Shown here: in pieces, positions 13,839-38,671 of the stretch
Layout of the letters: each line of letters begins with the position of its first letter
Position numbering within the stretch: position 1 is the stretch's first letter
Assembly: GCA_002104905.1 (NCBI GenBank)
Contig: MCFE01000120.1
Span: forward strand, 62,001-126,000
Origin: Basidiobolus meristosporus CBS 931.73
Taxonomy: Eukaryota; Fungi; Basidiobolomycota
Length of the DNA: 64,000 bases
Direction of reading: 5' to 3'
The notes under the pieces: model-generated
The model's database searches: none
What the model was told of the DNA's origin: nothing
The model's input: the letters and a program-made list of their open reading frames with translations, nothing else
Made by a program: the position numbers and the translations under genes

Positions 13839-14595
13839 CCGCCAGGTCTTTCACTGCTACTTTGTCTGAGTGCTTCCTGTAAAGAACCATGTTTTCTCCA
13901 AGATAAATTCTGCTGTGACACATGTGTTTTAGCCTGCTGGTCCCTTGCTGGCACTCTTCTGGCTACCTGACGTTTCTTTTCCACTTGCTTTGAGCCCTCA
14001 ACTGCAGTTGTGACAGGCTCCTGTAAAAGCAGCTGGTTTTTATCACTGTCAGGTCCTTCATGGCTACTTTGACTGGGTGCTTCTTGAGTAGTACTACACT
14101 TTTTCCTTGATAAATTTTGTGTGGTGCATCCATGTCTGCCTGCTTGTCCCTAATTTGCTCACTTCCTGCTACCTGATGTCTTTTTGATGCTTGTCTACGG
14201 CTTTTGGCCCTGCTTGTAATGGGCTCTTGAGGAAGCTGCTGGTTTTATGCCTTGGCACTCTTGTTCTCCAGCCTTTGATAGTTTCTGCTATTCTTAAGAT
14301 ACCTTCTTAGCATACCAGTGCTGGTACAAAATCTATTTGCCTGTTTGAATCCTGGATAATGCTCATGGAGCAAGTCAAGTGCATTCTGCTTGGCCTTGAG
14401 TTCCCAATGATCCCATGATAAGCCAGCCTCAGGTGATGGCATGCTAGACTTCTGATGGCCTCCTGTATATAAGCCCACTCTTCAATATTGCACTCAATGG
14501 CTTCACAGATCTTCAATATCATTTGACTTCTAGGCTTTGGTATAAACACCACATTGTCTCCCTCCCACACTATGATAGATTCCTCTGCGGGCAAT

Positions 14596-14787
14596 AGACT
14601 TGTTCCATGATTCCAGCTGATCATAGTGCACAATAGTGCCATAGCATGCCAGATGGTGCCTGATCATGCCACAGAGTGCCAGATGGTGCCATACAGTGCC
14701 AATTTGGGATCAAAATTGACAGGCATATGACTCTAAAATATCAAATTAATAACAAAATATACATCAATGGCACAAGGGAACAGGTCT
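14596..14787. mobile_element. MITE (192 bp), TIR AGACTTGTTCC, TSD AAT
   Basis: AAT|AGACTTGTTCCAT...GGGAACAGGTCT|AAT inside CACTA ORF2. Internal ~10-bp units ending TGCC; second copy at 21272-21482. Confidence 0.85.
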
Positions 14788-15830
14788 AATATCTTTGGGC
14801 ACTGTTGTTGTGCTTTAAAGGCTGTACAGTGTTTTGCTGCTGTTACATTCTGAAATGGCGCAGTTCTTGGCTGTGACACTGAGCTTCTTGAGTTCCTTCT
14901 TTACAGCAAAGATACTGCTTTCTCTACCTGGGATATTAATTGCTCTAAACGTATTATCTGCTCATCCTGTTACTGGGCTATTTCCAGATTTCTCTGGGCC
15001 ATTGCATCTATCCTATCAGACACTGCACCTAATTGCTTCATTAATGCTGTGGTATGAGCTGGCAACATACTTGCTAATATGGGTGGTAGTGATGTTATCT
15101 TGGCCACTTGTTGTTCCTCAACTGAGGGTACTGTGTTTACTACATTCTCATCTGCCTCAGCATACTGGTGAGCTTGTGACTCTGCAGAGATTCTCATTTG
15201 CCTACTTGACTGAGAGCCTGAGGAGTCTGCATTATTACCTTCAATGGGCACACTGTCCACAGGGCCTTTTTTGGATGTAGCCATGGTTGTAGCACCAAAT
15301 GTCAAAGCAAGCTGTTGTCCAACCATTCTTCTGTTGCTGTCAGCAGTAGGGCTGGGTTGAGAACCAGACAACTTTGCTTTGTTTTTTGGCAGCCTATGTA
15401 TGGAAGTGAGTAAAACCAAACGTGAAATAGTGTTACATGTACATGTGTATGTGGTGCCACAACTTTATTTATAATGCTTACTATGGTGGGTCATCATTGA
15501 ATCATACATTCATATAGGTGCAATGTCTCAAATACCAGACTTTCTTAAGTTCACATGAGTATTGACCAAAAAGTGATTTAATATCATTATATTGTTGAAG
15601 GTCAAGCTGTTTGCCCCATGGACAAGACTACTTTGACTCAACACTGGAAGAGAAGAGAAAAAAGACCATGTGGCTATTGTGGCAAGCCTCTCAGCCATGA
15701 TGCATGCAGACAGCATAGGAAGTATTACAAGGATCATGGCCAGTGTTTTGTCACCCAAGTCATATTTGACCATTCATTGGTCACTACTGTACCAATATTA
15801 TCTTGCTGGCTAGTTGATACCTCTTGCAAA

Positions 15831-17075
15831 GTTGCCATATACCTTGTATTGCTGGTAACATATGCATCTTGCAAGCATATGCTTGTTGCCACCACTTCTG
15901 CATGAAATACCTCATGTTTATCCCCAAAGAACTTTTAGGTATTTGCCAATATATTTCTGCTCCCTGCTGGATTCTGGTCCCCCATATAGGTGTGCTCCAT
16001 CACTTATTTGTGTGAATTCTTTATTGAATGGTGCAAAAATTGGCTTGCAACTAAGAGAAATCCGGTATACCTTGGAAGCATTCTGCTAATAGAGATAGTT
16101 TCTTGTTGCACCTAACCCAACTTTGCATTACTCAACTGATTACCCACACATTGGGGCTGCTTAGCTTCTTAGTGCCATAGGTATAAGTGTCCCACATGCA
16201 CATCTGTTGTCAGTATTTTACAACTCTTTCAGGCTGTCCTCTATGTGACAACTCATCATGTTCATGACAGGCTTGAAGGTAATTTTATTGATGAGATTGT
16301 GATATGGTAGTACCTACAACTTGACTTGTCTTCCTATCTCCCCACACATCTACTGCATAGGAAACTCCCAAAAGATGAAGCAAGGTCCACTATTCTCAAC
16401 ACACCAAGCAAGATGGAGTACAAATGGATACAGTAGCAGCAGAGTTCTACATGTTCAGCTATATGCATGTACTATAGTTGCTTGAATCCTGTCACAAACT
16501 GTTTGTACAAAAGCTGTAGATGTATCAAGTTGAAATTGGTGATTCCCTTCTGGATGTTTATTCCTACAATGTCCACATATAAATTCCAATGCTTCCAATG
16601 TACTCTCTGCAGAAATGGCTTTAGAAGGCCACTTAAAAATACACATATCCAGTTAATCCAGTACTTGCACTTGTATTGGTGTATATCTGTATGTATGCTG
16701 ATTGGAGCCCATGAGAAATACTTGGGATAGTGGATATTTTGTGATATCTTGCCAATTTTTTCAAATTTCTCTGGCATCTCAAAGGGCTCATTCAGCTTGA
16801 AATGCCCCTTGTACAACTTGGTCATCAGTAAAGGGATAATGTTGAAAAGCAAATGCATTGCTTCCAGTGCAAAGCTTTTGCACCAACCGGTACCTTTATC
16901 TTAAGTATCTCTAGTTTCTGATTAATTTCATATTCTGGCAAATGGCTCATAGCTAGCCAACTTTTGTATAATTGCATGCCAACTTCTGTGCATTGTTTCT
17001 GCCAAAAGATTATGTTTTTAGTATAGGTGCTTGGGTAACAATAATGTGTGTCAGTTATGGAGTAAGTCCCCTGGA
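15831..17075 (-). pseudogene. CACTA/EnSpm (Tnp2-like) transposase, C-terminal half of the outer copy
   Basis: ORF 16472-16858 HLLFNIIPLLMTKLY...YPKYFSWAPISIH...YKCKYWINW; downstream CVENSGPCFIFWEFPM. Frameshifts and stops present. Confidence 0.85.
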
Positions 17076-18124
17076 CCCTATGAAAAATAACTTGGTGCTG
17101 CTAGTGGATCCAATCCAGACCCGCCATCAGGATCCCATTGAGAGACAATCATAATACCAGCAGCTTGGAATTAGTAACCCTCCTTACATTTGTTCAAGTC
17201 AGTGTTTTGCTAATCATGCAACCAACTAAAGGGATAAAACTTGACAATATTTTATTGGTGCTATGAAAAAATTAATATGGTATTGTTGTGGTCTTTTAGC
17301 ACTCTATAACTATTTTAAGTGGATCCAGTTGGCCAGGACATCCAATTACCTTATATGGCAAGAAATGTGATGGTACTTTGATGGCCTCACAGAAAGACTC
17401 TGATAGTATTATAATGGCAGTTTGACAGCCTGTTGTATCCAAGAGAAAAGTGAAATAAAACTCTTGAATGAGTTAACTGAACCCAAGTGACAACTAAGTG
17501 CAGAATCTTAGAATTGTCAAGCGTAACAGAAATATTAGCAGGGAAGTTCTGGTCTAATACTGGTTTTGTATGTAGCTGAGTTGGGCTATAAATGCAACAG
17601 AGTTGGTTTGCTATACAGGCTAGGCTTGGTGTTCTTGGGAATGCTAGATATGCTAAGCTTGGGTGAAAACTAGAACAGAATTGCTGAATTCTTAATTTTG
17701 CTAAGGCACAATCTTAATTTTGTTGAGACACACACTAAACCAAATGGTTCAGTAATCTTTATATGTTTCTGATCAAGTGGAATCAGTGGGCGCTAAGAGA
17801 CTGGACTAATTGAAATCTGTTGTGGTGTTGATAGGTGCATAAGATAAATGGAAATTTGCATCATTAACCAGCTGATGTCTTGGCAACTGCTAGGTGGTTG
17901 GATATATCTTGGATGACTAATCCGTTGGAAAGGCTTAGCAGATTAGTTGAGGACGTAATCACCACATGAGAATTGATCAGGTGTGACAGCTTAGAAATAG
18001 CTTTGGAGAAGTGATAGAATAAACCATAACCAGGATTTGTTATATTGGGTTAAGGAGAATCAGTAAGGGTACAAGATTTCTAACAGAGTGAAATTGGCTA
18101 AGTTTTATATGTTGATGCATAACA

Positions 18125-18340
18125 TCACTTGCTCCTGGGTGAGGAGTTTTCCAATACCCTCTGGGTTCCCCTGCAGCTCCAACACTGATCAATGATGGCA
18201 ACATCTTCATAGTTGTTGTATGGTTCCCAGGTATTGTGTTTGGCATCATAACTTTTCCACTTGATTAAATAAAGGCACTTAGGTTCTTCTTCATCATGGT
18301 CAACAATAGCTTCAACTTTATAGGATCCATAAGTTACTGG
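18125..18340 (-). pseudogene. Integrase C-terminal chromodomain of Gypsy B1
   Basis: Translates YKVEAIVDHDEEEPKCLYLIKWKSYDAKHNTWEPYNNY...SPRSK*, with the stop directly abutting the 3' LTR. Confidence 0.85.
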
Positions 18341-20043
18341 GTCTTGAGATATAAGCCTGAGTGAAGAATGTGGAAGGTTTTTGGGTAGCAGTGCTCAAGT
18401 ATTGTCCTGAAGTACAAGAAATCCTCTGGTGGTACATCTGACAAATTTGAATGGGTCTTCACACTTAGGGTCAAGTTTAGATTGTTGGATTGGGTCTAGT
18501 GTCATGACATATGACCCATCAGGGAAACTGCTGTTCCTGTGTCTTGATGCGTATGTTGAAGTCATCTTTTGCTGTGAGGTCTTACTTCTGGCACTAATTG
18601 CTTGGTAGATAATGTTGGTAAGGTACCCAATCCGGTTCTTTAGCTTATATGTATTTAACTTTGCTAACTCTGTGTTCTGGTAGTCTCCAAAGTGGTTGAA
18701 TTTTTTCCAAACATCAACAAAAATAGCATCATCAATGTAGAGCAGCAATTTTGGTGTTGATAGCATACTCCATTGTTGAAATGTACTTGTCCCAAATCTT
18801 CTTGATACTTCTGATAAATTTCTGGATGATGTCCACTGAGGTCTAAACATGTCTTTCAGCAAGGCCATTAGCTTTGGGATGATAGGGAGTGATCAGATGG
18901 TGATCAGTGAGGCTATTCTGGCAAAGGACTTTGATCAGGTGATTCACAAATTCTGTTCCATTATCCAATTGAATCACCTTTGGGAATCCCAATAGGCAGA
19001 AGAGCTTGATTAGTGCTTGCGCAATAATGGCAGCATACTTGTCTGGGATAGCTTTGAGGAAGACAAAATTTGTGCAGACATCCACAGTTACAAAGAGGTA
19101 GGGATTACCATCATCACTAGTGGTGAAAGGTCCAGTTTGATCAATTGCTATGTGATCCTTGGAAGGCCTTCATGGATGGGACTCACAGGGTGAAACCCAT
19201 GTAGGCTGATATTGTAAAGCTGACATTCTCTGCAAGACTTGACAAGCTCTAGGCAGTCAGCTTTGATATTTGGCCAGTGATATCCATCATAGTGTAGCTT
19301 CTTCATAAGTGTGCTAGCTCTAAAGTGGCCAAGCAAATGACTCCTCTCTATCAATGTTTTTCTTTCATTGGCATGTGGGATACTCCAAGTTGCTGAATCC
19401 AGTTGAGGAATTATTTTGGAAGCTGTAGTGAGCTTACTGATTGCGTCAGTAATCATATTTCCCTCCCAAGGTGAAGTTGTGAAATGTCTTGAAAGATGGT
19501 CAGGCAGGATGTTGAAGATTCCTGGGCAATGAATAACTGTGTATTCATAATCAAGTAGAGAATCAAGCCAGTTGGTAAGCATTGGAGTCAGAATCTTTTG
19601 AGTATGGATATAGATGAGGGCTTGGTGGTCTGTGTACAAAGTAAAAGGGTTATTCCATAAGTACTGATGAAACTTCTTCAAGGCAAAGACTACAGCAAGT
19701 AGCTCCTTCTTGGTGGCAGAGTAGTTTTGCTCAGCAGGTTGTAGGGATCTGGCTTGGAAAGAGATCCAGTGAGGCCAATTTTGGTCTTCATACTGGTATA
19801 GGACCAGTGAGGTAGATATTGGTCTTCATCATGGTAAAGGATAGCTCCTAACCCAACATTAGAGGCATCTGTAGGAGCAACTAAAGTCTTAGTAAAGTCT
19901 GGGTAGGATAGGGTGGGTGCTGGAGGGAGTAACTGGCAGAGTAACTCAAATTCTTGGTCATGAGCCTTGTTCCAGGCTGAGGGAAGTCTAGGACTATGGT
20001 GTAGTGCATCTAATGGGGCACTCAAAGAGAACATGAGAGGTAT

Positions 20044-21126
20044 TGTGGTAATGGAAAGTATTCCATTACTGTAATATTTCTAAACCAATATGGCACTAAT
20101 TTCATTATTTTGCTTTTTGCTATTGTAACACACAAGTGAAAGATCCAGAATTTCCAACTTTGCAGGACAAATGCACCAGACCCTGACAAGCAATCCACCC
20201 AAGAATATTATGTCATACAGAATACATAGTAGCCAGCACATGTTTCAAATTACAGCTCATTTGAAGCAGTACCTAGAGAGTTATGACCAAAGGAGTCCAA
20301 TTGTTATATATATTATGCCTTATTGCTAGGATTACTCCGGTGACTTTGATCATGCGTAACTTCCAAACCAGCCAATGAAATCACTTGTGATTTTCACAGG
20401 AGCTGCACCTATGTCTGATCTGCCCCACTGCAAATTTTAGATTTGTATCATGTGTATTGCTTGTGCAATCACACAAAACCTTGATCCTTCAGAGTTTTAA
20501 TATATTTGACTTCCCCAGCTGAAAAATAAAGGGAGAGCCTCTCTTTCCAGAATCTCCACACTACAATTACAAGCTTAAAGGTCTTAAGATTTCCCCTGCA
20601 TCACTTGCACTGTTGAGTATTCTGACTTTGACTGGTACTACATCAGTAAAGAGTTTGCAAAGCACACAGGAATCCAATCTGAGTTCTACAAGAAACTACC
20701 ACTTTTCTGTTGGAAAAGTCCCCTCTAAGAAATCCCTTTACTCTAAAGACACCCCTGTACTTTAAAGACCCCTTTAGAGACTTCTACAACACACCCCTAT
20801 AGGTTAAAGGGGAGTTCAGAATTTCCATATCAGGAATTATTTTTTTCAGAAAGGAAAGTGACTTCCAAAGAAGGAAGAGTTACTATCAAAGTAAATAAGC
20901 CCATTAGTCAACAGAAGGTCAAAACACTGCTGTAGAAGTGATAAACACTGCCTATAGTATATTTTAAGCCCAAGATTGAGGAAATTAGTGACAGTCATAT
21001 CTTCTATCGGTATATCAAACTCCCAATAAACTATTCCAGTATTTGCATACTGGAAGTTGTTGTATATTGTTGATTAGCCTCTAAATTGTAGAACAAGCCC
21101 CAAACTAATCACAATACAACACAACA
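20044..21126. repeat. Family F copy 2 (1083 bp, reverse of F1), TSD GTAT/GAAT
   Basis: TGTGGTAATGG...CACAACA inserted in B1 pol. The empty site GAGAGGAATGTGTTCC in B2 (~28446) defines a 4-bp TSD. Confidence 0.85.
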
Positions 21127-21271
21127 GAATGTGTTCCCTGAAATAGTTGAAAACTCCAAGATAATGTTGGAGTTGCTTGGTACTAGTGGGTTTTGGCCAT
21201 TCAGGAATATTGACCAATTTGAAAGGGTCAAGCTGGTAGCCATCTGGTGTGACAATGAATCCAAGTAGATT

Positions 21272-21482
21272 AGACTTGTTCCATTGTGCCATTGATCATA
21301 GTGCCAGCAAGTGCTGCATATTTTGTTATTAATTTGATATTTTAGGGTCATATGCATGTCAATTTTGATCCCAAGTTGGCACTGTATGGCACTATCTGGC
21401 ACTCTGTGGCATGATCAGGCACCATCTGGCATGCTATGGCACTATTGGGCACTATGATCAGCTGGAATGATGGAACAAGTCC
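21272..21482. mobile_element. MITE copy 2 (211 bp, reverse), TSD ATT
   Basis: ATT|AGACTTGTTCCAT...ATGGAACAAGTCC|ATT in B1 RT; empty site GTAGATTGATTTT in B2 (~28590). Confidence 0.85.
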
Positions 21483-24400
21483 ATTGACTTTGAGGCAAGC
21501 AAAACCGCACTTTATCAGCATTAAGAATCAGTCCAGCAGCTGTCAGTCTATTGTTTACATCAGTGACATGGGCTGCATGATCAGCACATTTGTGGAAAAT
21601 ATGATGACATCATCAACAACTACTAAGGTGTTTGGTGCATTCTTGAGTATTGAAGTCATAACTCTCTGGAACTTGCTGGTAAGTGTCTTTAGGCCAAAGG
21701 GAGCTCCATGAAACATCCATTGCTTATTAGTCCAGGTAAAGGCAGTCTTACGCTGACAATCAGGATGGATTTGGAATTAGTGATATGCATCCTTCAAATT
21801 CAATTTGGAGAATACCTTTGCACATAATAGTGAGGAAAAGATATCCTGGATTCTTGAAGTTGGAAATTTATCATCTTGAACAAGTTTGTTCATAGGTCTA
21901 GGGTCCAAACATGGTCTCTTCAGAGTTATATTTCCATTTGCATCTTTCTTGGGTGCATGCGTCAAAGGGCTGTTGAATGTTGTGTTGAGAGGGGCTTGAA
22001 TGATAATTCCATTGTCAGCATATTTTTGGACTACTTCATCAACTAAGTGTTTACAAGAATATGGAGTTGGGTATTGCCATCTCCATGCTGACTCAGCAGG
22101 TGGGGTTTCAAGTGCAACAATGCATTCTGAGATGGTGCTCAGTAAGCAATGGATTGTCATCACTAACTCCAGCTAGTCTCATTTGTCTCTGGAATCTATC
22201 ACAGAAGTATTGCACAGATTCACCTCTTTGCATTTTTAGTTTTCCATAAGTTGCAGTTTAGATGTGGTTTCTTAAGGGGATCTTCAAAATGGCTGCAAAA
22301 GAGGTTCTGGGCAACTTTCCATGTACTATTGGAAGGAATGTTCACCACAACCCAGTCAGCATCTTACATGGTGTAACACAGAGGCAGAAGTCCAGCCAAA
22401 TTGGTGTCAGGGTCTAGCTGGTGCCCAGCCAAGACATGACTAAGCTTGTAAAGAAACTCAGTAAGACTCTTTATGGCATTGGCTCCTTCAGCATCAAGAG
22501 GCAAGGATCTTGGCACAACAACCAGGGCAGGTCTAGATGAAGATGTTAATCTGGAGGATCCAAAGGCATGACTTCTTGGTGGCTGATGCAGAGCAAGGCT
22601 TGCTGGATTTTCAGTGCTGTCAATTGCAATGGCAACATTCTCCAGGGCTTCTTTGATAATTCCAATTTCATCTTGGTAACCAGAAATGACTACAAGAAGT
22701 TCATCTCTACAATGATTGTCAGATCTTGTCTTGGTAAGCTTGGAGTGCTCAAGCATCAAAGTGTTTCTTTCATACATGATGTTTCAAGCTGATCAGTTTG
22801 TTCTTCCTGATTTCTGCAGGCCTCTTGCAGCATAGAACAACTTGGATTGCTTGCTGCTGAGGACATATTGTAAAGGGGTTGAATGTAATGGAATCCAACA
22901 AAAAAAAAGTTGTATCCAAGAGAAAAGTGAAATAAAACTTTTGAATGAGTTAACAGTACCTAAGTGAGAACTAAGTGCAGAATCTTAGAATTATCAAGGG
23001 TGACAGAAATATTAGCAGAGAGGTTCTGGTCTAATATTGGTTTTGTATGGAGTTGAGTTGGGCTATAAATGCAACAGAGTTGGCTTGCCATAGAGGCTAG
23101 GCTTGGTGTTCTTGGGAACACTAGATATGCTAGGCTTGGGTGGAAACTAGAACAGAATTTCTGAATTCTTAGTTTTGCTGAGGCACAATTGTAATTTTGT
23201 TGAGACACACACTAAACCAAAAAGTTCAGTATTCTTTATTTATATTTTACTGAGCAAGTGGATTTAGTAGGTGCCAAGAGACTGGACTAATTGCAATCTG
23301 ATTGGGTGTTGATAGGTGCATAAGATGAATGAAAAATTGCATCATTAGCCAGCTGATGTCTTGGCAACTACTCAGTGGTTGGATGGTTCTCAGATGACTA
23401 ATCCTTTAAAAAGGCTTAGCATATTAGTTGAGGACGTAATTACCACATGAGAATTGATCAGGTGTGACAGCTTAAAAATAGCTTCTGAGAAGTGATAGAA
23501 TAAACCATAATAGGGATTAGTTTTATTGGGTTAGGAAAAATCAGTTAGGGTACTAGATCTTCTAACAGAGTGTAATTGGCTAAGCTTTAAATGTTGACAA
23601 ACAACACAGCCTACCGCTGGTCTGTATAATGCTACCATACCAATTTTCCTAATGATATATGCTTTTTCTACCTCCTCTTGTGCAACTCATATATTCCAAT
23701 GTAGTATCACCCTTGTTTATTTGCTTTACCACTACTACTATGGGTATTCCGCCTATTGTTTGAATCAAAAAAACTGTGGCCTCCTGCTTACCTACCTCTA
23801 CAAATGCACACACCCGCCACAATTGGCATGCTTCTATCACCTCAACTTTACAGCTTTTGAGTGTAATACTTGCAAAGTTGCCTTATACCTTGTACTGCTG
23901 GTAACATATACATCTTGCAAACATATGCTTGGTTATTGTCAATCATGTCATGAATACCTCCTGAATATCTACAAAGAACTTCTTGGCATTTAGCCAATAT
24001 ATTCCTTCTCCCTGCTGGATTCTAGTCTCCCCCATAGGAGCACTCTGGCTTTTGTTTGTGTGAATTCTGTATTGAATGGCATCTAAATTGGCTTGTGACC
24101 ATGATAAATCCAGCATACATTGGTAGAGTTTTCCTGATAAAAATTAGTTGTTTGTAGCACCCAACCCAACTTTGCATTACTTAACTGACTACCCATGCAT
24201 TTGGGCTGCTTAGCTTCTTAATGCCATAGACATAGGTGTCTCCATGTGCACATTTGACCTTGGTAATTTCCAACTCTTTCTGGTTGCCCTCCATGTGCCA
24301 ACTCATCACATCCAGGACGGATTTGAAGGTAATTTTATTGATGAGATTGGCATTTGGTAGTACTGGTGAGTTGAATTGTCTTTCTATCTCCCCACACATA

Positions 24401-26593
24401 TGCTCCATAAGAAACTCCCAAAAGGTGAAGCAAGGCCAATATTCTCCACACACTATGCAAGAAGGAGTAGAGAATGAATACAGTAGTGGCAGAGATCTAC
24501 ATGTTCAGCTTTATGTTTGTAGTATAGCTGCTCAAATTCCGTCACAAACTCCACACACAATAGCTCTAGATGCATCAGTTTGGCATTCATGATCCACTTC
24601 TGGATAAATATGCCTACAATGTCCACATATGACTCCCAATGCTTGCAATGTACTCTTGGTAAGAATGGCTTCAGAACACCACCTTAATAAGTACATATCC
24701 AGTGCATCCAGTCTTTGCATTTGTATTGTTGCATATGTGTATGAATATTAATTGGGGCCTGTGAGAAGTACTGAGGGTAGCAAATACTCTGTAATATCTT
24801 GCCACTTCTTTCAAATTTCTCTGGTACTGCAAAGGATTCATTTAGCTTGAAATGCCTCATGCACCACTTGGTCATTAGTAAAGGGATATTGTTGAAAAGC
24901 AAATGAATTGCTCCCAGTGCAAAACTTTTGCTGCAACAGATACCATCAATCTTAAGTATCTCAGGTTTCCAATTGTTATCATACTCTAGCCAATGGCTTA
25001 TAGCTTGTCAACTTTGCTGCAATTGCATGCTGACTTCTGTATGTTCTCTCTGTGGAAACTTGATGTTCTTAGTGCTGGGGTTTGGGTAATAATAATGTGT
25101 GTGAGTTATGGAGTAAATCCCCTGGATCTCACACATTTGACAGCAATACCATCCAGGGTACCCAGAAAAACCTGCTTTCTTGCTGATGGCTGGGGTATCT
25201 CTAATGCAGATAATAATATATGCTTTTACATGACAAACATTTAGTGCTATCTTGCCGGAAAGCATACAAAACTTACCCAGCAATGGATACAGGTTACTAT
25301 CCAGTTTGGACAGCAACTTAGGCCCAGATACCAGTGATACTTCCATCAGATTATTGCTCTGCTACTGTAATATGGGCAGCAGATTCAGGTTGATGAGAAT
25401 CAGTGGCCAGCAAGACTTACTAATAGAGTACTTGTTTAATGAGAATCCATCAAGTGCCAAAGCAAAGGCATGGTCATATATATCTTCAAAGTAGCCCTTG
25501 CTTCTTAACAGTTTGTAATGTTTGCCATCAAATATACTGGATATGTTTCAGCTTGATTGATACTGAGTGCGCTACTGTATAGCTTTGCAATATTTTAGAA
25601 CTGCTTCCGCTTCCTCAGATGGGGTACAACCGGAATATATCCAGAGTGTGAACAATGTTTTCCCTCAATGGTGGTGGATTCCTGACAATTTGGATATGTT
25701 GCAATGGCAGCATTTCTGTATGTGAATGCCATGCAACTGTTTACACATGCTAGAAGCAGGACAGTCTCTGGAACATATGTTACCAACCGCATGATGGTTG
25801 TCCACTTGTACCATGTACATGGTAAGTTACATCCTGGTATGAGTTTGGCAAGAAGTAGTAATAAATCCTCAAAGCCCCCATTACTGATATTAGTGTTGTA
25901 TCCAAGAGAAAAGTGTAATAAAACTCTTGAATGAGTTAGCTGAACCTAAGTGATAACTAAGTGCAGAATCTTAGAATTTGTCAAGGGTGACAGAAATATT
26001 AGCAGAGAGGTTCTGGCCTAATATTGGTTTTGTATGGAGTTGAGTTGGGCTATAAATGCAACAGAGTTGGTTTGTTATACAGGCTAGGCTTGGTGTTCTT
26101 GGGAATGCTAGATATGTTAAGCTTGGGTGAAAACTAGAACAGAATTGCTGAATTCTTAATTTTGCTAAGGCACAATCTTAATTTTGTTGAGACACACACT
26201 AAACCAAAAGGTTCAGTAATCTTTATTTATATTTTTCTGATCAAGTGGAATTAGTGGGTGCTAAGAGACTGGACTAATTGAAACCTGGTGGGGTGCTGAT
26301 AGGTGCATAAGATAAATAAAAAGTTGCATCATTAATTAGCTGATGTCTTGGCAACTGCTAAGTGGTTGAATAAATCTCAGATGACTAATCACTTGGAAAG
26401 GCTTAGCAGATCAGTTGAGAATGTAATGACCACATGAAAATTGATCAGGTGTTACAGCTAAAAATTGATTCTGAGAAGTGATAAAATAAACCATAACAGG
26501 GATTAGTTATGTTTGGGTTAGGGAAAATCAGTTAGGGTACTAGATTTTCTAACAGAGTGAAATTGGCCAAGTTTTAGATGTTGATGCACAACA

Positions 26594-29500
26594 TCACTTC
26601 ATCCTGGGAGAGGAGTTTGCTGATACCTTGTGGGTTCCCCTGTGGCTCTAATACTGATCAATGATGGCAACATCATCAAAGTTGGTGTAAGGTTTCCAGG
26701 TGTTGTGTTTGGCATCATAACCTTTCTACTTGATTAAATAAAGGCACTTTGGTTCTTCTTTATCATGGTCAACAATAACTTCAACTTCACAGGATCCAGA
26801 AGTAACTGGGTCTTGCAATATAAGCCTGAGTGAAGAAGGTGGAAATTCTTTGGGTAGCAGTGCTCCAGTATTGTCCTGAAGTACATAAGACCCTCCAGTG
26901 GTACATCCAACAGCTTTAAATGGGCCTTCATATTTGAGGTCAAGTTTAGACTGTTGGATTGAATCTAGTGTCATGACATATGACTCATCTGGAAAGCTGC
27001 TGTTCCTGTGTCTTGAGGCATATGTTGAAGTGATATTTTGCCGTGTAGCCTTACTTCTGGCACTGATAGCAGGGTAGACACTATTTTTAAGGTACTCGTA
27101 TTCAAACTTGCTAGCTCATAATTCTGGTAGTTGCCAAAGTGGTTGTATCTTCTCCCAAACATCAAAGAAAATGGTGTTGATCCATGTAGAGCAGCAATTT
27201 TGGTGTTGATAGCATACTGTATAGTGGGAATGTACTTGTCCCAATTCTTCTTGATACCTTTGATAGATTTCCTGATGGTATTCACAGAGATCTGAACATG
27301 TCTTTCAGCAAGTCCATTAGCTTCTGTATGATCTGGAGTGATCAGATGGTGATCAATGGCACTATTCTGGCAGAGGGCTTTGATCATATGATTGACAAAT
27401 TCTGTTCCATTATCCAATTGAATGACCTTAGGGAATCAAAAAAGGCAGAAGAGCTTGAATAGTGCTTGTGCAATAGTGGCAGCATACTTGTCTGGGATGG
27501 CTTTGAGGAAGACAAAACATGTGCAGACATCCACAATTACAAAGAGGTAGCAATTACCATCATCACTAGTGGTGAGAGGTCCAGCTAGATCAATTGCAAT
27601 ATGATCCATAGGAAGGCTTGCATGGACGGGACTCAGGGGCTGGAATCCATGGCAGCTGATATTTTAAAGTTGACATTCTCTGTAAGATTTGACAAATTCT
27701 AAGCAGTCAGCTTTGATATTTGGCCAGTGAAATCCATTAGAGTGTAGCTTCTTCATAAGTGTGTCAGCTCCAAAGTGTCCAAGTAGATGATTCCTCTATA
27801 TCTACATTTTCCTTTCATTGGTATGTGGGATTTTCCAGGTTGCTGAATCTAGTTGAGGAATTATTTTGGAAGTTGTAGTGAGCTTACTGATTATGTCAGT
27901 AATTACATGTGCCTCCCAAGGTGTAGCTGGGGAGAGTCTTGAAAGGTGGTCAGGCAGGACGTTGAAGATTTCTGGGCAATGAATAACTGTATATTCATAA
28001 TCAAGTAGAGTATCAAGCCAGTTGGTAAGCATTGGAGTCAGAGTCTTTTGAGTGTGGATATAGACCAAGGCTTAGTGGTTAGTGTACAAGGTAAAAGGCT
28101 TACCCCATAAGTACTGATGAAGCTTCTTCAAGGCAAAGACTAAGGCAAGTAGCTCCTTCTTGGTGGCAGAGTAGTTTCTCTCAGCCAGTTGTAGAGATCT
28201 GGCTTGGAAAGAGATCCAGTGAGGCCAATTTTGGTCTTCATACTGGTATAGGACAGCCCCTAACCCAATATTAGATACATCTGTAGGAACAACAAAGGTC
28301 TTAGCAATGCCTGGGTAGGATAGGGTGGGTGCCTGTGGGAGCAACTGGCAGAGTGACTCAAATGCTTGGTCATGAACCTTGTTTCAGGCTGAGGGAAGAT
28401 CAGGACTATGGCATAAAGCATCCAAAGGGGCACTCAATGAGGACATGAGAGGAATGTGTTCCCTGAAATAGTTGAATACTCCAAGATAATGTTGGAGTTG
28501 CCTAGCACTAGTGGGTTTTGGCCATTGAGGAATATTGACCAATTTGAAAGGGTCAAGCTTGTAGCCATCTGGTGTGATAATGAGTCCAAGTAGATTGATT
28601 TTGAGGCAGGAAAAGCTGCACTTTTTTGCATTAAAAATCATTCCAGCAGCTGTCAGTCTATTGATTACATCAGTGACATGAGCTGCATGATCATCATGGT
28701 TTGTGCCAAATATCATGACATCATCAACAAATACTAAGGCCTATGGAGCGTTCTTGAGTATTATAGTCATGGCTCTCTGGAACTTGCTGGTCAGTGTCTT
28801 TAGCCCAAAGGGAGCTCCCTGAAACATCCATTACATATTATTCCAAGCAAAGGCAGTCTGATGCTAATGGTCAGGATGGATCTGGAATTGGTGATATGCA
28901 TCCTTCAAGTCCAGTTTGGAGAATACCTTTGCACCCAATAGCAAGGAAAAGTTGTCCTGGAATATTGGAATTGGAAATTTATCATCTTGGAGAAGCTTGT
29001 TCAGAGGTCTAGGGTTCAAAGAGAGTCTCTTTAGAGTTAGATTTCCATCAGCATATTTCTTAAATGCAAGCATTAAAGGGCTGTTGAATGTTGTGTTGAT
29101 AGGGGCTTCAGTGATAGTTCCAATTTTGTACCACTTTGGGACTATGCCATCAACCAAGTGTTGACAAGAATGTGGAATTGGGTATTGCCTTCTCCATGTC
29201 AGCTCATCAGGTGGGGTATCTAGTGTAACAATCAATTCTGGATTAGTGCAGAAACTGTGCCTGGGAATGGCTTGATTTCTTTCTATGACCGGCTGAATTT
29301 CCAATTTGATTGACTGAGAATACGCTTGAAAAGTTGGGGTTGACTCCTATACTTCTGGATGGGGAGAAGTAATCTCTGGAATCTGATCCATTCTGGGTGG
29401 CTGAGACTTGGTGATTCCAGGATATGAAACTGATAGTCTGCCTATGTGAAAGCCAAGTTTGGTGAAGGTGTCTAGACCAATGACTACCTGAGGTCCATCT

Positions 29501-29800
29501 GGAATGTCAAAAGCTTCCATCTGATGGATTATAATTATTGAACCACTGTGTATGCTGATTGGGCTGGTGATACCAATTCTTGGGGCTGAGAGGTCCTTAG
29601 CCGCAAGTATGATTTTTCCTGCTTGCTTTTCTATTGCCAATTTGAGTTCTTTGACCACATTAGCTGATACAATAGAGTTGGATGATCCAGTATCCAAGAG
29701 TGCTATATATGATTGGCCATTGAGTTTGAGTGGGACCTCTATAGCTTTTGGCTGCGCAATGGGTTGCTCCTTTTCTTGGACAGTTGCAATTTAACCGGAA
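26594..29800 (-). pseudogene. pol: Gypsy B2 pol (PR-RT-RH-IN-CHD), disrupted
   Basis: ORF pieces 29347-29697, 28864-29304, 28384-28716, 28072-28344, 27802-28068, 26971-27417, 26726-26974. Confidence 0.9.
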
Positions 29801-30299
29801 TTTCAAAGAGGTTGTGATAATCTTGAACTGTAAGTTCTTCATATGCTTTCTCATACCCTGTCATATCAATGATTGCATGATTGTCTAGAATCTGAGTAAT
29901 TTTTGGCAATGGTGTAGAGTTCTTCTTAGGACAGGTAGGTGATCTATGTCCCATCTTTCCACATTTAAAGCACTTGTCATCAGCATATGGATTATCAGTT
30001 TTGGTGTTTTGCTGCTTCTCTGATGTGTTTCTGAACTTGTTTGACTGCTAGGTGATGCCTTTGTGCTCACTGGTACAGTGATAGCATCTTCCATGAAGAT
30101 CACAATGCTTGCTAGCGGTTGACTTCTTCTCAGTCATATGACCGCTCTCTTTTCTGGTTGTTGCTGCATCTTGAATGGAGTTGCCTGAAGCCTGGCTAAC
30201 AGCTGCAGTCATAGTGATTGTAAGTGTACATATCTCTGAGATTTTGTCATAGGTACATGCAGGATTGCATGCTTTGACAATAGCATTATTGAACAGTAG

Positions 30300-31055
30300 C
30301 TAGTGTGAAAGATTTGAAAGAAAATGAGAGGTAAGCAATGGATTTTCATCACTAATTCCAGCTAGTCTCATTTGTCTTGGGAATCTATCACAGAAGTGTT
30401 GCATAGATTCACCTTTTTGCATTTTAGTTTTACATAAGTTGTAGTTTAGATGTGCTCTCTTGAGGGGACCTTCAAAATGGCCACAAAAGAGGTTCTGCGC
30501 AACTTTCCATGTACAATTGGAAGGAACGGTCACCTCAGCCCAGTCAGCATCTTGTATGGTGAGACAAAGAGGCAGAAGTCTAGCCCAATTGGTGTCAGGG
30601 TCTAGCTGGTGCGCAGCTAAGACATGACTACACTTGTAAAGAAACTCAGTAGGATTCTTTATTGTATTGGCTCCTTCAGCATAAAGAGGAAAGGATCTTG
30701 GGACAACCACCAAAGTAGGTTTAGAGGGAGATGTAGATCTGGAGGCTCCAAAGGCATGACTTCTTGGTGGCTGATGCAGAGCAAGGCTTGGTGGATTTTC
30801 AATGCTGTCAATTACAATGGCAACATTCTCCAGGACTACTTGGATAATTCCAATTTCATCTTGGTAACCGGAAATAACTTCAGCAAGTTCATCTCTACAA
30901 TGATTGTCAGATCTTGTCTTGGCAAGCTTGGAGTGCTCAAGCATCAAAGTGCTTCTTTCATGCAGGATGTTTTCAAGCTGATCAGTTAGTTCTTCCTGAT
31001 TTCTGCCGGCTTCTTCCAACATTGAAAGATTTGGATTGCTTGCAGCTGAGGACAT
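30300..31055 (-). pseudogene. gag: Gypsy B gag N-terminal ORF (251 aa piece)
   Basis: ORF track 30300..31055, immediately downstream of the 5' LTR; homologous to B1 22364-22880. Confidence 0.75.
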
Positions 31056-32541
31056 ATTGTCTTGTAGATGAATGTAGTGGAATTCAACAAAAAAAATGTT
31101 GTAGCCCAGTGAAAAGTGAAATAAAACTCTTGAATGAGTTAATTGAACCTAAGTGATAACTAAGTGCACAATGTTAGATTTTGTCAAGGGTGATAGAAAT
31201 ATTAACAGAGAGGTTTTGGTCTAATATTGGTTTTGTATATAGTTGAATTGGGCTATAAAGGCAACAGAGTTGGTTTGCTTTACAGGCTAGGCTTGGTGTT
31301 CTTGGGAATACTAGATGTGCTAGGCTTGGGTGGAAACTAGAATGAAATTGTGGAATTCTTAATTATGCTGAGGCGCAATCATAATTTTGTTAAGACACAC
31401 ACTAAACCAAAAGGTTTGGTAAACTTTGTTATACTTTTCTGCTTGAGTTGCATTAGTAAATGCCAAGAGACTGGACTAATTGAAATCTGTAGAGGTGTTG
31501 ATAGGTGCATAAGATGAATGAAAAATTGCATCATGGATCAGCTGATGTGTTGGCAACTGCTAAGTGGTTGGATAAGTCTCAGATGACTAATCACTTGGAA
31601 AGGCTCAACAGATCAGTTGAGGATGTAATGACCACTTGAGAATTGATCAGGTGTGACAGCTAAAATAGATTCTGAGAAGTGATAAAATAAATCATAACAG
31701 GGATGAGTTATGTTTGGGTCAGGGAAAATCAGTTAGGGTACTAAATTCTCTAATGGAGTGAGATTGGCCAAGTTTTAAATGTTGATGGACAACAATCAGT
31801 AGAAACACGCCACTTCTCTAGCCACAATATTACATCATTCACCAGTAGATGGATTACAGAGCTCACTTGGCTCCATAAAGTATCCTTGGCAATTGTTGCA
31901 ACAAGTGTTGTCTCATTGCATATAGGGATTTGAACAGGCTCATATGTGGTACTGTTGTTAGGGGAGAGAGGCTCAAAATCTATCAATGAACCTTCTTAGT
32001 CAGAGCTATCACTCTGCATAACATATTCAGAAGGCTGAGGTGAGCCTAAAGGTGGCACCAACTCACCTGACTCAGTTTGCACAAGGTGACAAAGATGGCC
32101 AGGTGCCAATATAGAAGTTTCAACTGGCCAGCAAAATAAAACTGGTACAGTAATGACCAATGAATAGTCAAATATGACTTGGGTGGAAAAACACTGGCCA
32201 TGATCCTTGTAATACTTTCTACACTGTCTGCATGCTTCATGGCTGAGAGGCTTGCCACAATAGCCACATGGTCTTTTTTGTCTTCTCTTACAGTGTTGAA
32301 TCAAAGTAGTCTTTTTCATGGGGCAAACAGTTTGACCTTCAGCAATGTAACGCTATTATATCACTTTTTGGTCAATACTCATGCGAACTTAAGAAAGTCT
32401 TATATTTAAGACATTTCACCTACATAAAAGTAAGATTCAATGATGACCTGCCATAGTAAGCATTATAAATAAAGTTGTGGCACCACATACACACATATAT
32501 GTAACACTATTTCTGCTTTGGTTTGACTCACCTACATGTAT

Positions 32542-35414
32542 ATTCCGCTAAAAAAATAAAGCAAAGTCATCTGGTTCTGAACTAAACCCTACCACTGATG
32601 GCAACAGAAGAATAGTTGGACAACAGCTTGCTTTGACATTCAGTACAACAAGCAGGTCTATATCCAAAAAAGGCCCTATGGACAGTGTGCCCATTGAAGG
32701 TAATAATGCAGGCTCCTCTGGCTCTCAGTCAAGTAGGCAATTGAGAACCTCTGCGGAGCCACAAGCTGACCAATATGCTCAGGCAGATGGGAATGTAGCA
32801 GACACAGTTCCCTCAGTCAAAGATCAGCAAGTGGCCATGATAACATCACCACCATCAATATTAACAAGTCTGTTGACAGCTCACACCAAAGCATTAATGA
32901 AGCAATTAGGTGCAGCGGCTGATAGGATAGATGCAATGGCCTAGAGAAATCAAGAAATAGTGCAGAAAAAGGTTGAGTGGATAATAGGTTTGGAGCAATC
33001 AGTATCCCTGGTAGCAAAAGCAGTATATTTGCTGCAAAGAAGGAACTCAAGTAGCTCAATGTCACAGCCAAGAATTCAATCTTTTCCTGATGTAACAGCA
33101 GAGGAACACCATACAGTCTTTGAAGCACAACAACAGTACCCAAAGATAAAGCCCACAGGAAAATCTATCAAAGTGTGGGAGGGAGACAATGTGGTGTTTA
33201 TACCAAAGCCTAAAAATCAAAAGTCATTGAAGATCAGTGAAGATGTTGAGTGCAATAATGAAGAATGGGCTAATATATATGAGGTGGTCGGAAGTCTAGC
33301 ATGCCATCACCGTAAGGCCAGCATACCATGGGACCATCAGGAGCCCAAGACTAAACGGAATACACTTGACTTATTCCATCAGCATTATCCTGGATTCAAA
33401 TGGGCAAGCAGATTTTGGGCCAGCATTGGTATGCCAAGAAAGTATCTTAAGAATAGCAGAAACTATCAAAGGCAGAAGAACAAGGGTGCCATGGATAAGA
33501 ACCAGTGGCTTCTGCAAGTGCCTGCTAGAAGCAGGGCCAAAAGCTCCAGACAAATGTCAAAGAGACGTCAGGTAGCTGGAAGAGTGCCAATTAGGGACAA
33601 GCAGGCAGACATGGATGCACCACACAACATTTATCATGGAAAAAGCATAGTACCACTCAAGATATACCCAGTCAAAGCAGTAGTGAAGGACCTGGCAGTG
33701 ATAAAAACTAGCTGCTTTTACAGGAGCCCATCACAACTACAGCTGAGAGCTCAAAACAAGCAGAAAAGAAATATTGGGTTGCCAGAAGAGTGCCAGCAAA
33801 GGACAAGCAGGCCAAAACAGATGTGTTGTGGTAGGGTAAACATACCTCCCACAGACAAGTTTATTCATATAGTCATTATGATATACTTATGCATATTTTA
33901 TCTTATCAGTATTATCCCATTTGTCTTTTGCCTATATTATCAGTATTATCCCCATATAATGTTTACCCTGATTAGTTATTAGCATTAGTTATCCCAGATG
34001 TTATTCAGCTTTGTGATCAGTGTATGTATCTACATAAGGCAAGTACCCGCATCAGTACCTGTGAAACATGACCTAGGTCTGTGTTACCATCCCTACCATT
34101 TCAATACCGTATATGGTATTTCTATGTTGCACAGGTTTCACACTACTGATTCCTGAGTGGTTGAATGTGCTGTGCCTTTTAGAACCTTCCAGGACATTAT
34201 TGGTATATTTTTAGCTCATAGTGATGTCATCAAGAATTCCACTGATGCCTAAAATCTTCTAGAACCCTGTCATTGTTAATCACTTGGCAATTGGGAAAGG
34301 TATTTAAGGGAAAGCAATCCCTCATCAATAAATCATCTCTTCTATCAGTAACACTTTTACCTTATTGATTAGCAGTTGATCACTGCACCTGCCTTCAACA
34401 GTACATCTCAGACCTGCCATCAAGGAGCTTTTCAGGGTAGTGCACAAGACACACAAAGGCCTTTGGAGACACTTGGAGCACCTAGGAAGCTAGAGAAGCA
34501 GGAGCTTTTACCATCGTGACATATTGACCAAGACACCAGCAGTTTAGACACAAAGGTGATTGTACCCATCAGACACCTCACACACCTTGAGTTGTGCAGC
34601 TTCTCCCAGGAGTACCTCTACACCACCACAGTGTCAGAGCAGAATTTATCCAGGAGAAAATGTAGTTCTTTACAAGAGGCACTCAGACATATTAGCAGTG
34701 AAAGACCTGGCAGTGATAACAGAGAAGATAAAGGGAAAAATGTCTATCCAAGCCTGAGACAGGGAGGCATGCAAAAAAACTGCAGCTCTTACCAATTAAT
34801 GCCACATGCCAGGAACAGACTGATTCCCATCATAGCCAAGAAGATTTACCAACAAAACAGTTGTTTTCACAACAGTTAGAAGCACAGCCAGTTGAGCTAC
34901 ACTCCAGCAAGGTAGATGAGTTTGCTGAAAAAGGCAATTTGTCTACCACAGCCTCCACATTCTCCATTGTTAATAGAGAGATATCCCACAGACAGACAGG
35001 GCTATAATGTCAAGAGCTCAAAATACTACCACAATGCCTTCAGTGGAGTTTTGGAACATTAATAGGCACACCAAGAGGTTGCAGCACTTCTTCAAGAGCA
35101 GTGCTCAGCAAAGTGCACTGGAATATTGCAAGGACTTATTGCAATGACTGGCAGATGAGGTGCTAGACCTTGCAGTGCCAGCTGATGACTAGGATGTGTG
35201 GGAGCCAGTGAATGAACAGTGGCATAAAGCCATTGGGCTTCTGTCAAAGTTGTGGAACCAGAGCATTACAGCAGAAATACTTATTGGGTGGTGTACTTTA
35301 ATGGAGTCTCTTGTTGAGCATGAGGTTGGGCTCAATGTTAGTGTAGGGCATTGGGACTTGTATAAGTCAATACAACTGGCAATTGAGGTACAACTGAAGC
35401 TTCAACAGAAATAA
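32542..35414 (+). pseudogene. CACTA ORF2, unknown protein of about 690 codons net, interrupted by solo LTR D2
   Basis: ORF pieces 32633-32944, 32960-33826 and 35196-35414 with homologues in four other copies. The start is inferred from ATGCCACCAAAAGATAAAG at 37230 in the outer copy. Confidence 0.7.
33827..34630 (+). repeat. Solo LTR family D copy 2 (804 bp), TSD GTGT
   Basis: GTGT|TGTGGTAGGG...CACCACA|GTGT; near-identical to 13035-13838. Confidence 0.9.
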
Positions 35415-35745
35415 ATCAATAGGTACACATGAAGAGTAAGAGAAACAGCTGAGTCAGGAAGTAAGGAGCATGAAAAAGAGGCAATAGCCAATCAATGCAC
35501 ATAAGTGTAGGAGGGAATAGAGTGTCTAGGATCAGAAAGTGGGCAAATTGGCAGGGAATCAATCAAAAGCCACTTTTGTAATATTAGGATGAAATATTTT
35601 GACTAAGTTTGTCCTGAAATCTGGGGTGCAATTACTTTTCAATGGTCTCTGGATGGTGTCCTGACAGGATCAGTACCTCTTAGTCACAGGACTTTAACTT
35701 TGTGGCAGCCTGTTGACAGGATCATCCCAATAATTTTTCAAAGGT

Positions 35746-37009
35746 GGATCTTACATATTCAACAGCAATACCATCCATTGTGCCCAGAAAAGCCAGCTAT
35801 CATGCTAATGACTGAGGTATCTCCAAAGCATATAACAATATGTGCTTTTACATAATGGCAATTCACTGTTATCCCACTGGAAAGCATACAAAACTCATTC
35901 AGCCATGAACACAGTTAGCTATTCAGGTTGGCTGGTAGTTTAGGGCCAGATACCAGTGAGACTAACATCAAATTTCTGCTCTGATACCATAGGATTGGCA
36001 GCAGATTCAGGTTGATGAGAATCAGTGGCCAGCAGGACTCACTGGTAGTGCCAAGGCAAAGGCATGGTTGTACATACCTTCAAATTAGCCCTTGCTTCTT
36101 AGCTGTTTGTAATGTGTGCCATTGAGTATATCTAATATATCTGCACTTGATTGATACTAAGTATGCAACTTTATTGCTTCACAATATTTGTTGGACTGCA
36201 TGAGACTTCTTTATATGACATATAACTGGAATATATCCAGAGTGTGTACCATGTATTCTCGTAATGGTGGCATATTTCTGACAAGTTGCATACCTTGCAA
36301 TGGTGATAATTTCTGATGTGAATACCATGCAAATGTCAACACATGCTGGTCTCAGGATGGTCTCTGGGTCATATGCTGCCAGCTGCAAGATTGTTTTCCA
36401 CTTATACCATGTATATGGTAAGTTTCATCCTGGGATGATTTTGGCAAGTAGTAATAGGAAAATACTTGTTGCCCTCATTACTGATATTAGTGGAAGCATG
36501 CCACCTCTCTAACCACAATAATACATCAATCACCAGTAGATGGATTACTGGGCTCACTTGACTGCATAAAGTATCCTTACCATTTTCTTCCACAGGTGTT
36601 GTCTCATTGCTTAATGGGACTTTGCTAGGTTCATGCAGAGTACTGTTGTTATGAAAGATAGGCTCAAAATCCATCATTGAGCCTGCTTCTTCAGAGTTAT
36701 CACTCTGCATGCCATATTCAGAAGGCTGTGGTGAGCTTAAAGGTGTCACAAACTCTCCTGACTCAGTTTGTGCAAGGTGACAAGCACTGCCAGATGCTGT
36801 TGTAGAAGTATTGAGTGTCCAGCAAGATATTGCTAGTACAGTAGTCAGTGGTGAATGGTCAAATATGACTTGCATTACAAACACAGGCTGTGCTCCTTGT
36901 GATACTTCCTATGCTGTCTGCATGCTTCATGGCTGAGAGGCTTATTACAATAGCCACATGGACTTTTCTCTCTTCTCTAACGGTGTTGAATCAAAGTAAT
37001 CTTATCCAT
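35746..37009 (-). pseudogene. CACTA transposase N-terminal half of the outer copy
   Basis: ATG GAT AAG ATT ACT TTG at 37009; ORF 36402-36884; WPLILINLNL region at ~36000. Joins 17075 across the beta insertion. Confidence 0.85.
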
Positions 37010-37604
37010 GGGACAAACACTTTGCACTCAACAACATAATACCATTATGTCCCTTTTTGTCAATACTGATGTGAACTTACGACAGTTTTGTATCTGATAC
37101 ATTGCACAAACATGAATGTAAGATTCAAAGATGACCTACCATAGTAAGCATTTTAAATAAAGCTGTGGCACCACATGCACATGTATATGTAGCATCATTT
37201 CCCCTTTGGTTTGACTCACCTCCATACATATGCCACCAAAAGATAAAGTAAAGTCATCTGGCGCCCAACCAAACCCCATTGCTGACAGCAGCAGAAGAAT
37301 GGTTGGACAACAGCCTGCTTTGACATTTAGTGCAACAAGCAGAGCTATAATCAAAAAAGGTCCTGTGGACAGTTTGCCCAGCAGTGGGAATAAAGCATAC
37401 TCCTCAGGCTTTCAGTCCAGTTGGCAATTTGGGATATCTGTGGAGCCATAAGCTGACCATATGGCTGAAACAGATGAGAATGTGGCAAAAGTGGTATCCT
37501 CCGTTCAAGACCAGCAAGTGGCCATCATAATACAACCACCACCCATATTAGCAACTATGCTGTCAGCTCATACCAAAGCATTAATAGGCAATTAGGTGCA
37601 GCAG

Positions 37605-38671
37605 TGTGTTGGTGCATAGGTCCAAGGGAGAAATATGTCCAACACTTCTTAAGTGTTTTGTGTGTGGGGTGTTCACTGGGTGCAATAACCTCTGGCAAAC
37701 CCTGCTAGGAATACTTGTCTTCTGTCTCTAATCTATTGTGAAGGGGAATAAAGCCTCAAGCTTGTCAAAAGAAAACTTTTGAGCTAAAATCCCCAACTTA
37801 GTTGGCGTCTTAACAAATGTATATGCTGGGTTCAGTGTCCTTTGTGATGACAATGTACTAAAGCTTCCAAAGTCAATACAACTGTAAACTCCACCAGCAG
37901 GGACCTGATAAAAATGCAGCTGTGGTCAATAGTCACAAAGACAGAAAAGTGTCTTTGCCTGTACAAGAACAAACCTTGCAAGGAATCAAATATAATAAAG
38001 ATACCTACTCTGGGTATTCCTCACAAGTAGTGCCTCCAAGGTCAGTTGGATGTCAGCGTGGTCTCCTGGGAGTGTCCTGTGGTCTGGGGTTGGAAGTTCA
38101 GGTAGCAGCATGTAGCAGTGATCACACTAATCAGCAAGTCAGTATATTGATAAAGGGATGATGATTTATTGTTGAGGGATTGCCTCCCTCATATACTTTT
38201 CTTACTGGCTAAGTGATTACTAATCATGATGTCCCAAAAGGTTCTAGATATCAATAAATATCTTAATGACATCAGAATGACCTAATAATTTTCTAAGTGG
38301 ACACCCGAAGGCTCTAAGAGGCACTGCATATCCAACCAATCAGGAATCAGTATTCTGTAGCTTGTGCAACATAGAGATACCGTATATGGTATGAAAATGG
38401 TAGGGATGGTGACACGGGTTGACCATGTGTCACAGGTACTGGTACAGGTACTTGCCTAATATAGAAGCACTTGTAGCTACTAATCTTACATATAGTGAGG
38501 GGTAACTTATGCAATAAGTTAAGCAGGGGTTATAGTCAACTGGCTTATGGGATAGTACTGATCACGTAAGACAAATGGGATAAAACCAAAGTAAGTGTGG
38601 TAGAGATATAGGGAAGTAGAAATATGGGAACAAGCACATCTGTCAGTGGGTGTCACTGCTACCCCACTACA
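37605..38671 (-). repeat. Solo LTR family E (1067 bp), TSD GCAG/GTGG (ancestral GCGG)
   Basis: Homologous to 43835-44905; empty site GGTGCAGCGGCTGATAGG at ~32910. Confidence 0.88.

Follow-up and report, generated by a model that had tools for sequence, protein, structure and literature searches.

A probable CMC/EnSpm-type DNA transposon with CCCTA ends and two head-to-head genes in a nested repeat region of Basidiobolus meristosporus

Within a 64,000-nucleotide stretch of DNA from Basidiobolus meristosporus CBS 931.73 (contig MCFE01000120.1; in the following termed the window, to which all coordinates refer), the interval 17076-35745 raises the question of whether two divergently oriented genes, now interrupted by retroelements, belong to a single transposon and, if so, how far this transposon departs from systems that have already been described. 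A sequence-only reading of the locus had gone as far as proposing an undescribed two-component transposon system. We resolved the window by self-BLAST into three large copies (A, B and C) of one DNA-transposon family, accompanied by fragments and with long terminal repeat (LTR) retroelements inside them. The interval in question, element B, is one DNA transposon that is split by three LTR-type inserts. With a probability of about 0.85, we regard it as a dead copy, of autonomous type, of a cut-and-paste DNA transposon that belongs to the CMC (CACTA/EnSpm-Mirage-Chapaev) group and comes from a Basidiobolus-like fungus. What is unusual about it is that its two genes lie head-to-head around a central spacer and that the partner gene, open reading frame 2 (ORF2), is an orphan.

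Transposase, partner gene and subterminal motifs

The gene on the minus strand encodes a transposase of the Tnp2/Transposase_21 (CMC/EnSpm) type. In element B, it consists of an N-terminal part at 31795-32319 that begins with an ATG at 32319 and of a catalytic and C-terminal part at 23607-25893 that is decayed and contains many stops and frameshifts. The start of the gene is conserved in copies A (15618), B (32319) and C (37009). Fragment matches to the Pfam family Transposase_21 (PF02992) were obtained for two regions in B (25365-25547, E 0.002, and 25011-25361, E 0.028) and for one region in C (35918-36079, E 8e-6), and these three are collinear on the profile, where they cover positions 23-64, 116-156 and 47-86, respectively. 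When a 142-aa piece (16475-16900) was compared by HMMER with 1.84 billion representative proteins, only nine relatives were retrieved, among them P0002 (31.7 bits) and P0008 (37.9 bits), which score above the Pfam threshold for Transposase_21, and P0001, which has a weak DUF4218 match. By tblastn, P0001 and P0002 cover 25346-24184 and also the older copy of the family, AC, into which B has inserted (see below). The translated pieces contain, in this order, ALDGF, DTPA, CCQMC (CxxC), HYCIH (HxxxH) and FWEFLME, i.e., D, D, CxxC, HxxxH and E, with the catalytic glutamate probably residing in FWEFLME. All of these motifs align to their counterparts in P0001 and P0008, and the order is the one given for EnSpm and its relatives by Kojima (PMC12730594). 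An N-terminal CxxC...CxxC motif, CGYCGKPLSHEACRQC, resembles a zinc ribbon, with a weak match to DZR in Pfam (E 0.055). A KDZ-type transposase domain was not found in Pfam scans of the transposase pieces, which gave only Transposase_21, and the target-site duplication (TSD) described below, at 3 bp, differs from the 7-8 bp that define KDZ elements. The Tnp2-like gene on the minus strand postulated by the sequence-only reading has thus been substantiated, while its size of about 855 codons can only be bracketed at approximately 850-940 codons, as the stop cannot be placed. The closest relatives, P0001 and P0002, share 44-52% identity with the transposase and are fragmentary proteins from short metagenome contigs in ENA. 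Copies from the fungus itself seem to be missing from the protein collections, and empty searches for the partner gene carry less weight.

In all three large copies, transposase and ORF2 point outward from a common center, with starts at 15618/15397 in A, 32319/32542 in B and 37009/37230 in C. The intergenic spacer between the divergent genes measures 222 bp in B (32320-32541) and 220 bp in C, and the unit of transposase start, spacer and ORF2 start is collinear and uninterrupted in all three copies (76-84% identity). The divergent layout in three copies, first noticed by eye in the sequence, is therefore real. In the spacer of B, a TATA-like box, TATAAATA, occupies 32464-32471 and precedes the start of ORF2 by 78 bp; the box is present at equal distance in A (15466-15473, reverse strand) and, as TTTAAATA, in C (37152). 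The box presumably has promoter function, and the central spacer may serve as a bidirectional promoter.

ORF2 is located on the plus strand and extends from about 32542 to a TAA at 35412-35414, less an LTR that separates a first part (32542-33826) from a second (34631-35414). The former comprises an N-terminal low-complexity region, a long helix, a first globular block and a basic/serine-rich repeat, the latter an all-helical C-terminal block. With about 688 codons, in agreement with the roughly 690 originally estimated, ORF2 takes up more than one third of the element. The gene starts with ATG in C (37230), with ATT, a mutated ATG, in B (32542) and at approximately 15397 in A, and its sequence also occurs in two right-end fragments, F52 (51816-52921) and F10 (9802-10605). 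A majority consensus of the five copies reopened a frame of 228 codons that ends at the ORF2 stop. An open run of roughly this length has a chance probability of about 1e-8 or less at this composition. The reopened frame supports an ancestral ORF2 coding sequence. Copy A contains approximately 195 extra bp within ORF2 (14592-14790, at the equivalent of 33147 in B). They are missing from B and C and were either gained through a small insertion or lost by deletion in the B/C lineage.

No known family could be assigned to ORF2, just as expected from its initial description as an unrecognized partner gene. Pfam scans of ten ORF2 pieces returned no family and nothing notable at E<=1, and neither of the TnpA-type families (PF03004 and PF03017; Transposase_23/24) was matched. 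A word-indexed protein search with a 294-aa piece (lengths 162-514 aa) and a protein search with a profile built from five copies of the C-terminal block (lengths 72-227 aa) gave no match, profile searches against the PDB yielded nothing meaningful, and the ESM Atlas provided sub-threshold leads only (0.84 for archaeal and viral clusters, 0.88 for Basidiomycota clusters). In AlphaFold2 (AF2) models, the confident part of ORF2 is the long helix, residues 1-35 of the 294-aa piece.

Both coding regions are enclosed by non-coding subterminal regions, a left piece at 17076-17430 and a right region at 35415-35732. GGATC/GATCC sites are over-represented within the terminal 300 bp (Poisson P ~2e-5, palindromes counted on both strands). 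The left 300 bp contain three GGATCC sites (17106, 17130, 17321), and the right 300 bp three AGGATCA sites (35529, 35667, 35719), against only three sites in the whole 5.2-kb interior. The AGGATCA at position -216 is kept in four of four right ends. The GGATC-type motifs are thus candidate subterminal binding motifs.

How could such an element have worked? The CCCTA ends may have been bound by the zinc-ribbon-like motif in the N-terminal part of the transposase and cut by the D-D-E triad. ORF2 may have had an accessory role in transposition, as a putative functional counterpart of the plant TnpA/ORF2 protein, and it may have bound the GGATC-type subterminal motifs and so brought the ends together. 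We propose tentatively, as a possibility that could well prove wrong, that ORF2 founds an undescribed family of accessory proteins, that both genes were transcribed outward from one central bidirectional promoter, in place of alternative splicing from a promoter near one end, and that the GGATC-type motifs were recognized by ORF2. Alternatively, ORF2 could be cargo, i.e., a captured host gene or a passenger comparable to the TET/JBP genes, and dispensable for movement. Fungal EnSpm, Plavaka and KDZ elements do carry extra genes in various orientations (PMC12730594), and the lack of similarity to TnpA-type families as well as the orientation of ORF2 and its separate promoter region would fit independent acquisition. 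We nevertheless regard cargo as rather unlikely, given that ORF2 is found in every copy or fragment that spans the region (A, B, C, F52 and F10), that no cellular homologue appeared in two large searches and that the gene fills such a large share of the element.

Ends, target-site duplication and nested inserts

The left terminal inverted repeat (TIR) of element B, CCCTATGAAAAAT, occupies 17076-17088 on the plus strand, and its first base coincides with the breakpoint in the host copy. Its right counterpart lies at 35733-35745 on the minus strand, with the reverse complement ACCTTTGAAAAAT and the family consensus ...TTTTCATAGGG. Both are flanked by GGA, at 17073-17075 on the left and, matching it, at 35746-35748 on the right. 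Accordingly, the left junction (17073-17088) reads ...GTCCCCTGGA|CCCTATGAAAAAT and the right junction (35733-35748) ATTTTTCAAAGGT|GGATCTTAC. The TIRs are 13 bp long, start with CCCTA and share 11 of their 13 bases. Further right ends within the window are ...ATCATAGGG (CATAGGG) at 10605 and, at 41610, ...TTCATAGTG (CATAGTG), and a stub in inverted orientation (10788) has the sequence CCCTATAAAAAATTATTGAGATGATC. The TIRs agree across five termini in the window, with CCCTATGAAAAAT(T/A)A as the family terminus consensus.

Decisive evidence for these boundaries comes from the sequences on either side. According to self-BLAST, 15824-17075 to the left of element B is 79% identical to 23869-25126, and 35746-36492 to the right is 75% identical to 25123-25895. 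As the two flanks match adjoining stretches of the family, they are the two halves of one older copy (AC) that was split by B, and element B is therefore inserted into the transposase gene of a copy of its own family. When 17000-17075 and 35749-35830 were joined with one GGA, the product aligned to 25045-25225 without a gap at the junction and with 80% identity, whereas a join that keeps both GGA copies led to a 3-bp insertion in the alignment. The uninterrupted paralogous site reads CCCCTGGATCT and has a single GGA (25137-25139). This empty site fixes both ends of B and proves the insertion as well as the 3-bp GGA duplication, and with them the boundaries, the left TIR, the CCCTA ends and the TSD that had been read from the bare sequence; the other right ends in the window agree. 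The idea that 17076 might be a wrong boundary, since copy C starts where the block at 23869-25126 ends, was rejected, as this coincidence is the insertion site itself.

The length of the TSD could be tested at one insertion in the window. Here, the right junction ...CAAAGG T GGA TCT, compared with the empty site CCCCTGGATCT, contains a T that can be assigned to either side, and the duplication might accordingly be 4 bp (TGGA), with a right terminus without the last G and a length atypical for EnSpm. This is improbable, since the other right ends are CATAGGG or CATAGTG, i.e., seven bases that pair with CCCTATG, and the CAAAGGT of element B is of equal length and differs by two substitutions. 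That the whole unit is a composite of a transposase-bearing element and an unrelated ORF2-bearing repeat next to it might be suspected from the presence of only one left end in a window that is a dense mosaic of nested repeats, but this explanation is largely refuted and has a very small residual probability, given the collinearity of transposase start, spacer and ORF2 start in three copies at 76-84% identity and the enclosure of both genes by TIRs and a TSD proven via the empty site.

Three inserts interrupt element B. Gypsy B1 (17431-23606, minus strand) is bounded by LTRs at 17431-18124 and 22909-23606 that are 88.7% identical, with the TSD CAGCC. Gypsy B2 (25894-31794, minus strand) has LTRs at 25894-26593 and 31097-31794 with 88.4% identity and the TSD ATTAG/ATCAG. 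The LTRs of both have TG..CA ends, and both TSDs are 5 bp long. B1 contains a single open reading frame with RT_RNaseH followed by Integrase_H2C2, which is the Ty3/Gypsy order, and B2 was placed in the same family on the basis of 85% DNA identity to B1. The third insert, solo LTR D2, lies within ORF2 (33827-34630, plus strand), is 804 bp long and has TG..CA ends and the TSD GTGT. With the three inserts removed and one TSD copy kept for each, element B measures 5,775 bp, which is the approximately 5.8 kb anticipated for the de-nested element.

A D2-like LTR, 94% identical, is found at 13035-13838 in copy A, at another site and in opposite orientation. An internal inversion as the origin of the 804-bp LTRs of A and B was ruled out by their different TSDs (CCGC and GTGT) and different sites, which point to two independent insertions. 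Each of the three large copies harbors an LTR-type insert (13035-13838, 33827-34630 and ~39471-40672) within approximately 200 bp of equal element coordinates. The three belong to one or to related families, and all reside in the serine/basic section of ORF2, which is internally repeated; those of A and B are about 80 bp apart in element coordinates. The independent hits in A and B at nearly equal ORF2 coordinates suggest a target preference.

Decay of the family and the weight of the evidence

All copies of the family in the window are dead. Differences between copies of ORF2 are spread almost equally over the three codon positions (108/109/96 for A versus B and 162/153/184 for C versus B), and the same holds true for the N-terminus of the transposase. 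This flat pattern indicates that, once inserted, the copies drifted apart through neutral decay, and the ratio of nonsynonymous to synonymous substitutions (dN/dS) is therefore uninformative here. Element B inserted into the transposase gene of AC, was later struck by two Ty3/Gypsy elements and one LTR element that is now solo, and then decayed neutrally.

Several observations weigh against the assignment of element B to an autonomous-type CMC transposon with two genes of its own. All Transposase_21 matches of fragments from the window stay below the Pfam gathering score, which is due to the transposase gene being in pieces. The termini are CCCTATG...CATAGGG and not the CACTA...TAGTG or CAC..GTG typical of EnSpm, and a second copy of the left end (17076-17430) was not found within the window. 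The frame of ORF2 is lost mid-gene in every copy, and in the consensus as well, so that the length given above is approximate. ORF2 is also without a detectable relative in Pfam, the PDB and two large protein searches, and the AF2 models of both of its blocks are of low confidence (mean predicted local distance difference test, pLDDT, 54 and 59). Finally, no codon-position bias is seen, and these copies hence show no sign that purifying selection acted on the transposase or on ORF2.

The older host copy consists of a left half at 15824-17075 (minus strand), which carries the C-terminal part of the transposase, and a right half at 35746-41610, which corresponds to copy C and comprises the rest of the transposase, the 220-bp spacer, ORF2 and the right end CATAGTG. 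Transposase (minus strand, ATG at 37009) and ORF2 (plus strand, ATG at 37230) are readily located in copy C, which has received LTR-type inserts of its own at 37604-38669 and ~39471-40672. Copy A is inverted (12000-15823) and consists of the right end, ORF2 (minus strand), the spacer and, on the plus strand from the ATG at 15618, the first 68 transposase codons. Copy A shares 84% identity with B and breaks off at 15823, where it meets AC head-to-head. At this fusion (15823/15824), AC is truncated in the C-terminal region of the transposase, and two right ends (~12000 and 41610) face outward. The junction could be due to a deletion between neighboring insertions or represent an aberrant transposition product. 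Fragment F10 (9802-10605) is a deletion derivative in which the C-terminal block of ORF2 is joined straight to the right subterminal region, and of all right ends in the window, that of F10, ...ATCATAGGG, has been preserved best.

The window has a G+C content of about 40% and, with a CpG observed/expected ratio of 0.10, is a CpG-poor mosaic of nested repeats. For the whole window and element B, this ratio is 0.09-0.10, with TpG/CpA in excess (1.45), values that fit heavy cytosine methylation and deamination, or a process resembling repeat-induced point mutation (RIP), acting on all repeats. In the right third of the window, a 350-bp unit is present at least seven times in both orientations (41611-41960, 51471, 55221, 56309, 58771, 60995 and 61542); it resembles an LTR from a further retroelement family, with several nested or solo copies.

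Comparison with known transposon systems

Where, then, does the element stand among systems already described? The orphan partner gene, arranged head-to-head with the transposase gene in three copies, has withstood scrutiny. The label "undescribed two-component transposon system", on the other hand, is overstated, because a second open reading frame, CCCTA ends and an expansion of such elements in Basidiobolus have all been published. Termini of the CCC/CCCTA type have been known for CACTA-related animal elements since 2006 (PMC1636069), a second, fast-evolving open reading frame without known function belongs to the standard equipment of CACTA elements (PMC4158355, PMC1636069), accessory proteins of CACTA-related elements are dissimilar between lineages (PMC1636069), and a large expansion of CMC-EnSpm has been reported for Basidiobolus genomes (PMC5751038). 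A described head-to-head CACTA element was not found in the searchable literature, which is a weak absence, as Repbase and Dfam were outside its scope.

Copy B is a dead, nested fossil. If ORF2 was required for transposition, the family would show that the two-protein logic of CACTA elements can be set up anew with a partner protein that is unrelated and with another transcriptional arrangement, and it would offer a compact fungal system for studying the origin of accessory proteins of DNA transposons. Irrespective of this, the family is a major repeat of Basidiobolus, and a correct model with CCCTA ends, a 3-bp TSD and two divergent genes improves repeat annotation and stops fragments of ORF2 from being annotated as host genes.

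With the plant CACTA/En-Spm elements, element B shares a DDE transposase with the Transposase_21 domain, short TIRs, a 3-bp TSD and a poorly conserved second open reading frame (PMC4158355, PMC1636069), and its GGATC-type sites are candidates for the short subterminal motifs of these elements. It differs from them in having CCCTA instead of CACTA termini, in having divergent genes where the plant elements encode co-directional products of one alternatively spliced transcript, and in an ORF2 that is dissimilar to Transposase_23/24 (TnpA-type). The animal and fungal TRC elements, such as SmTRC1 and the Tribolium element with the TIR CCCTAGTAG..., also have CCC/CCCTA termini, a Transposase_21 domain and accessory proteins without similarity between lineages (PMC1636069), but were reported with direct repeats of 2 bp and co-directional spliced products, in contrast to the 3-bp TSD and head-to-head genes found here. 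The fungal EnSpm, Plavaka and ESTA families of the CMCT clade resemble our element in TSDs of 2-5 bp and in extra genes in variable orientation, whereas the families described have CA..TG or CAC..GTG ends, and TET/JBP as the cargo studied, instead of CCC..GGG ends and an orphan partner (Kojima 2025, PMC12730594). PIF/Harbinger elements are likewise two-gene DNA transposons, consisting of a transposase and a Myb-like open reading frame, and need a separate accessory protein, but their transposase belongs to an unrelated superfamily, and a Myb/SANT domain is not present in ORF2 according to Pfam. Gene orientation varies among the PIF/Harbinger families. The picture that results is that of a member of the known CMC/EnSpm superfamily with CCC-type ends, set apart by the orientation of the genes around the spacer and by the orphan ORF2.

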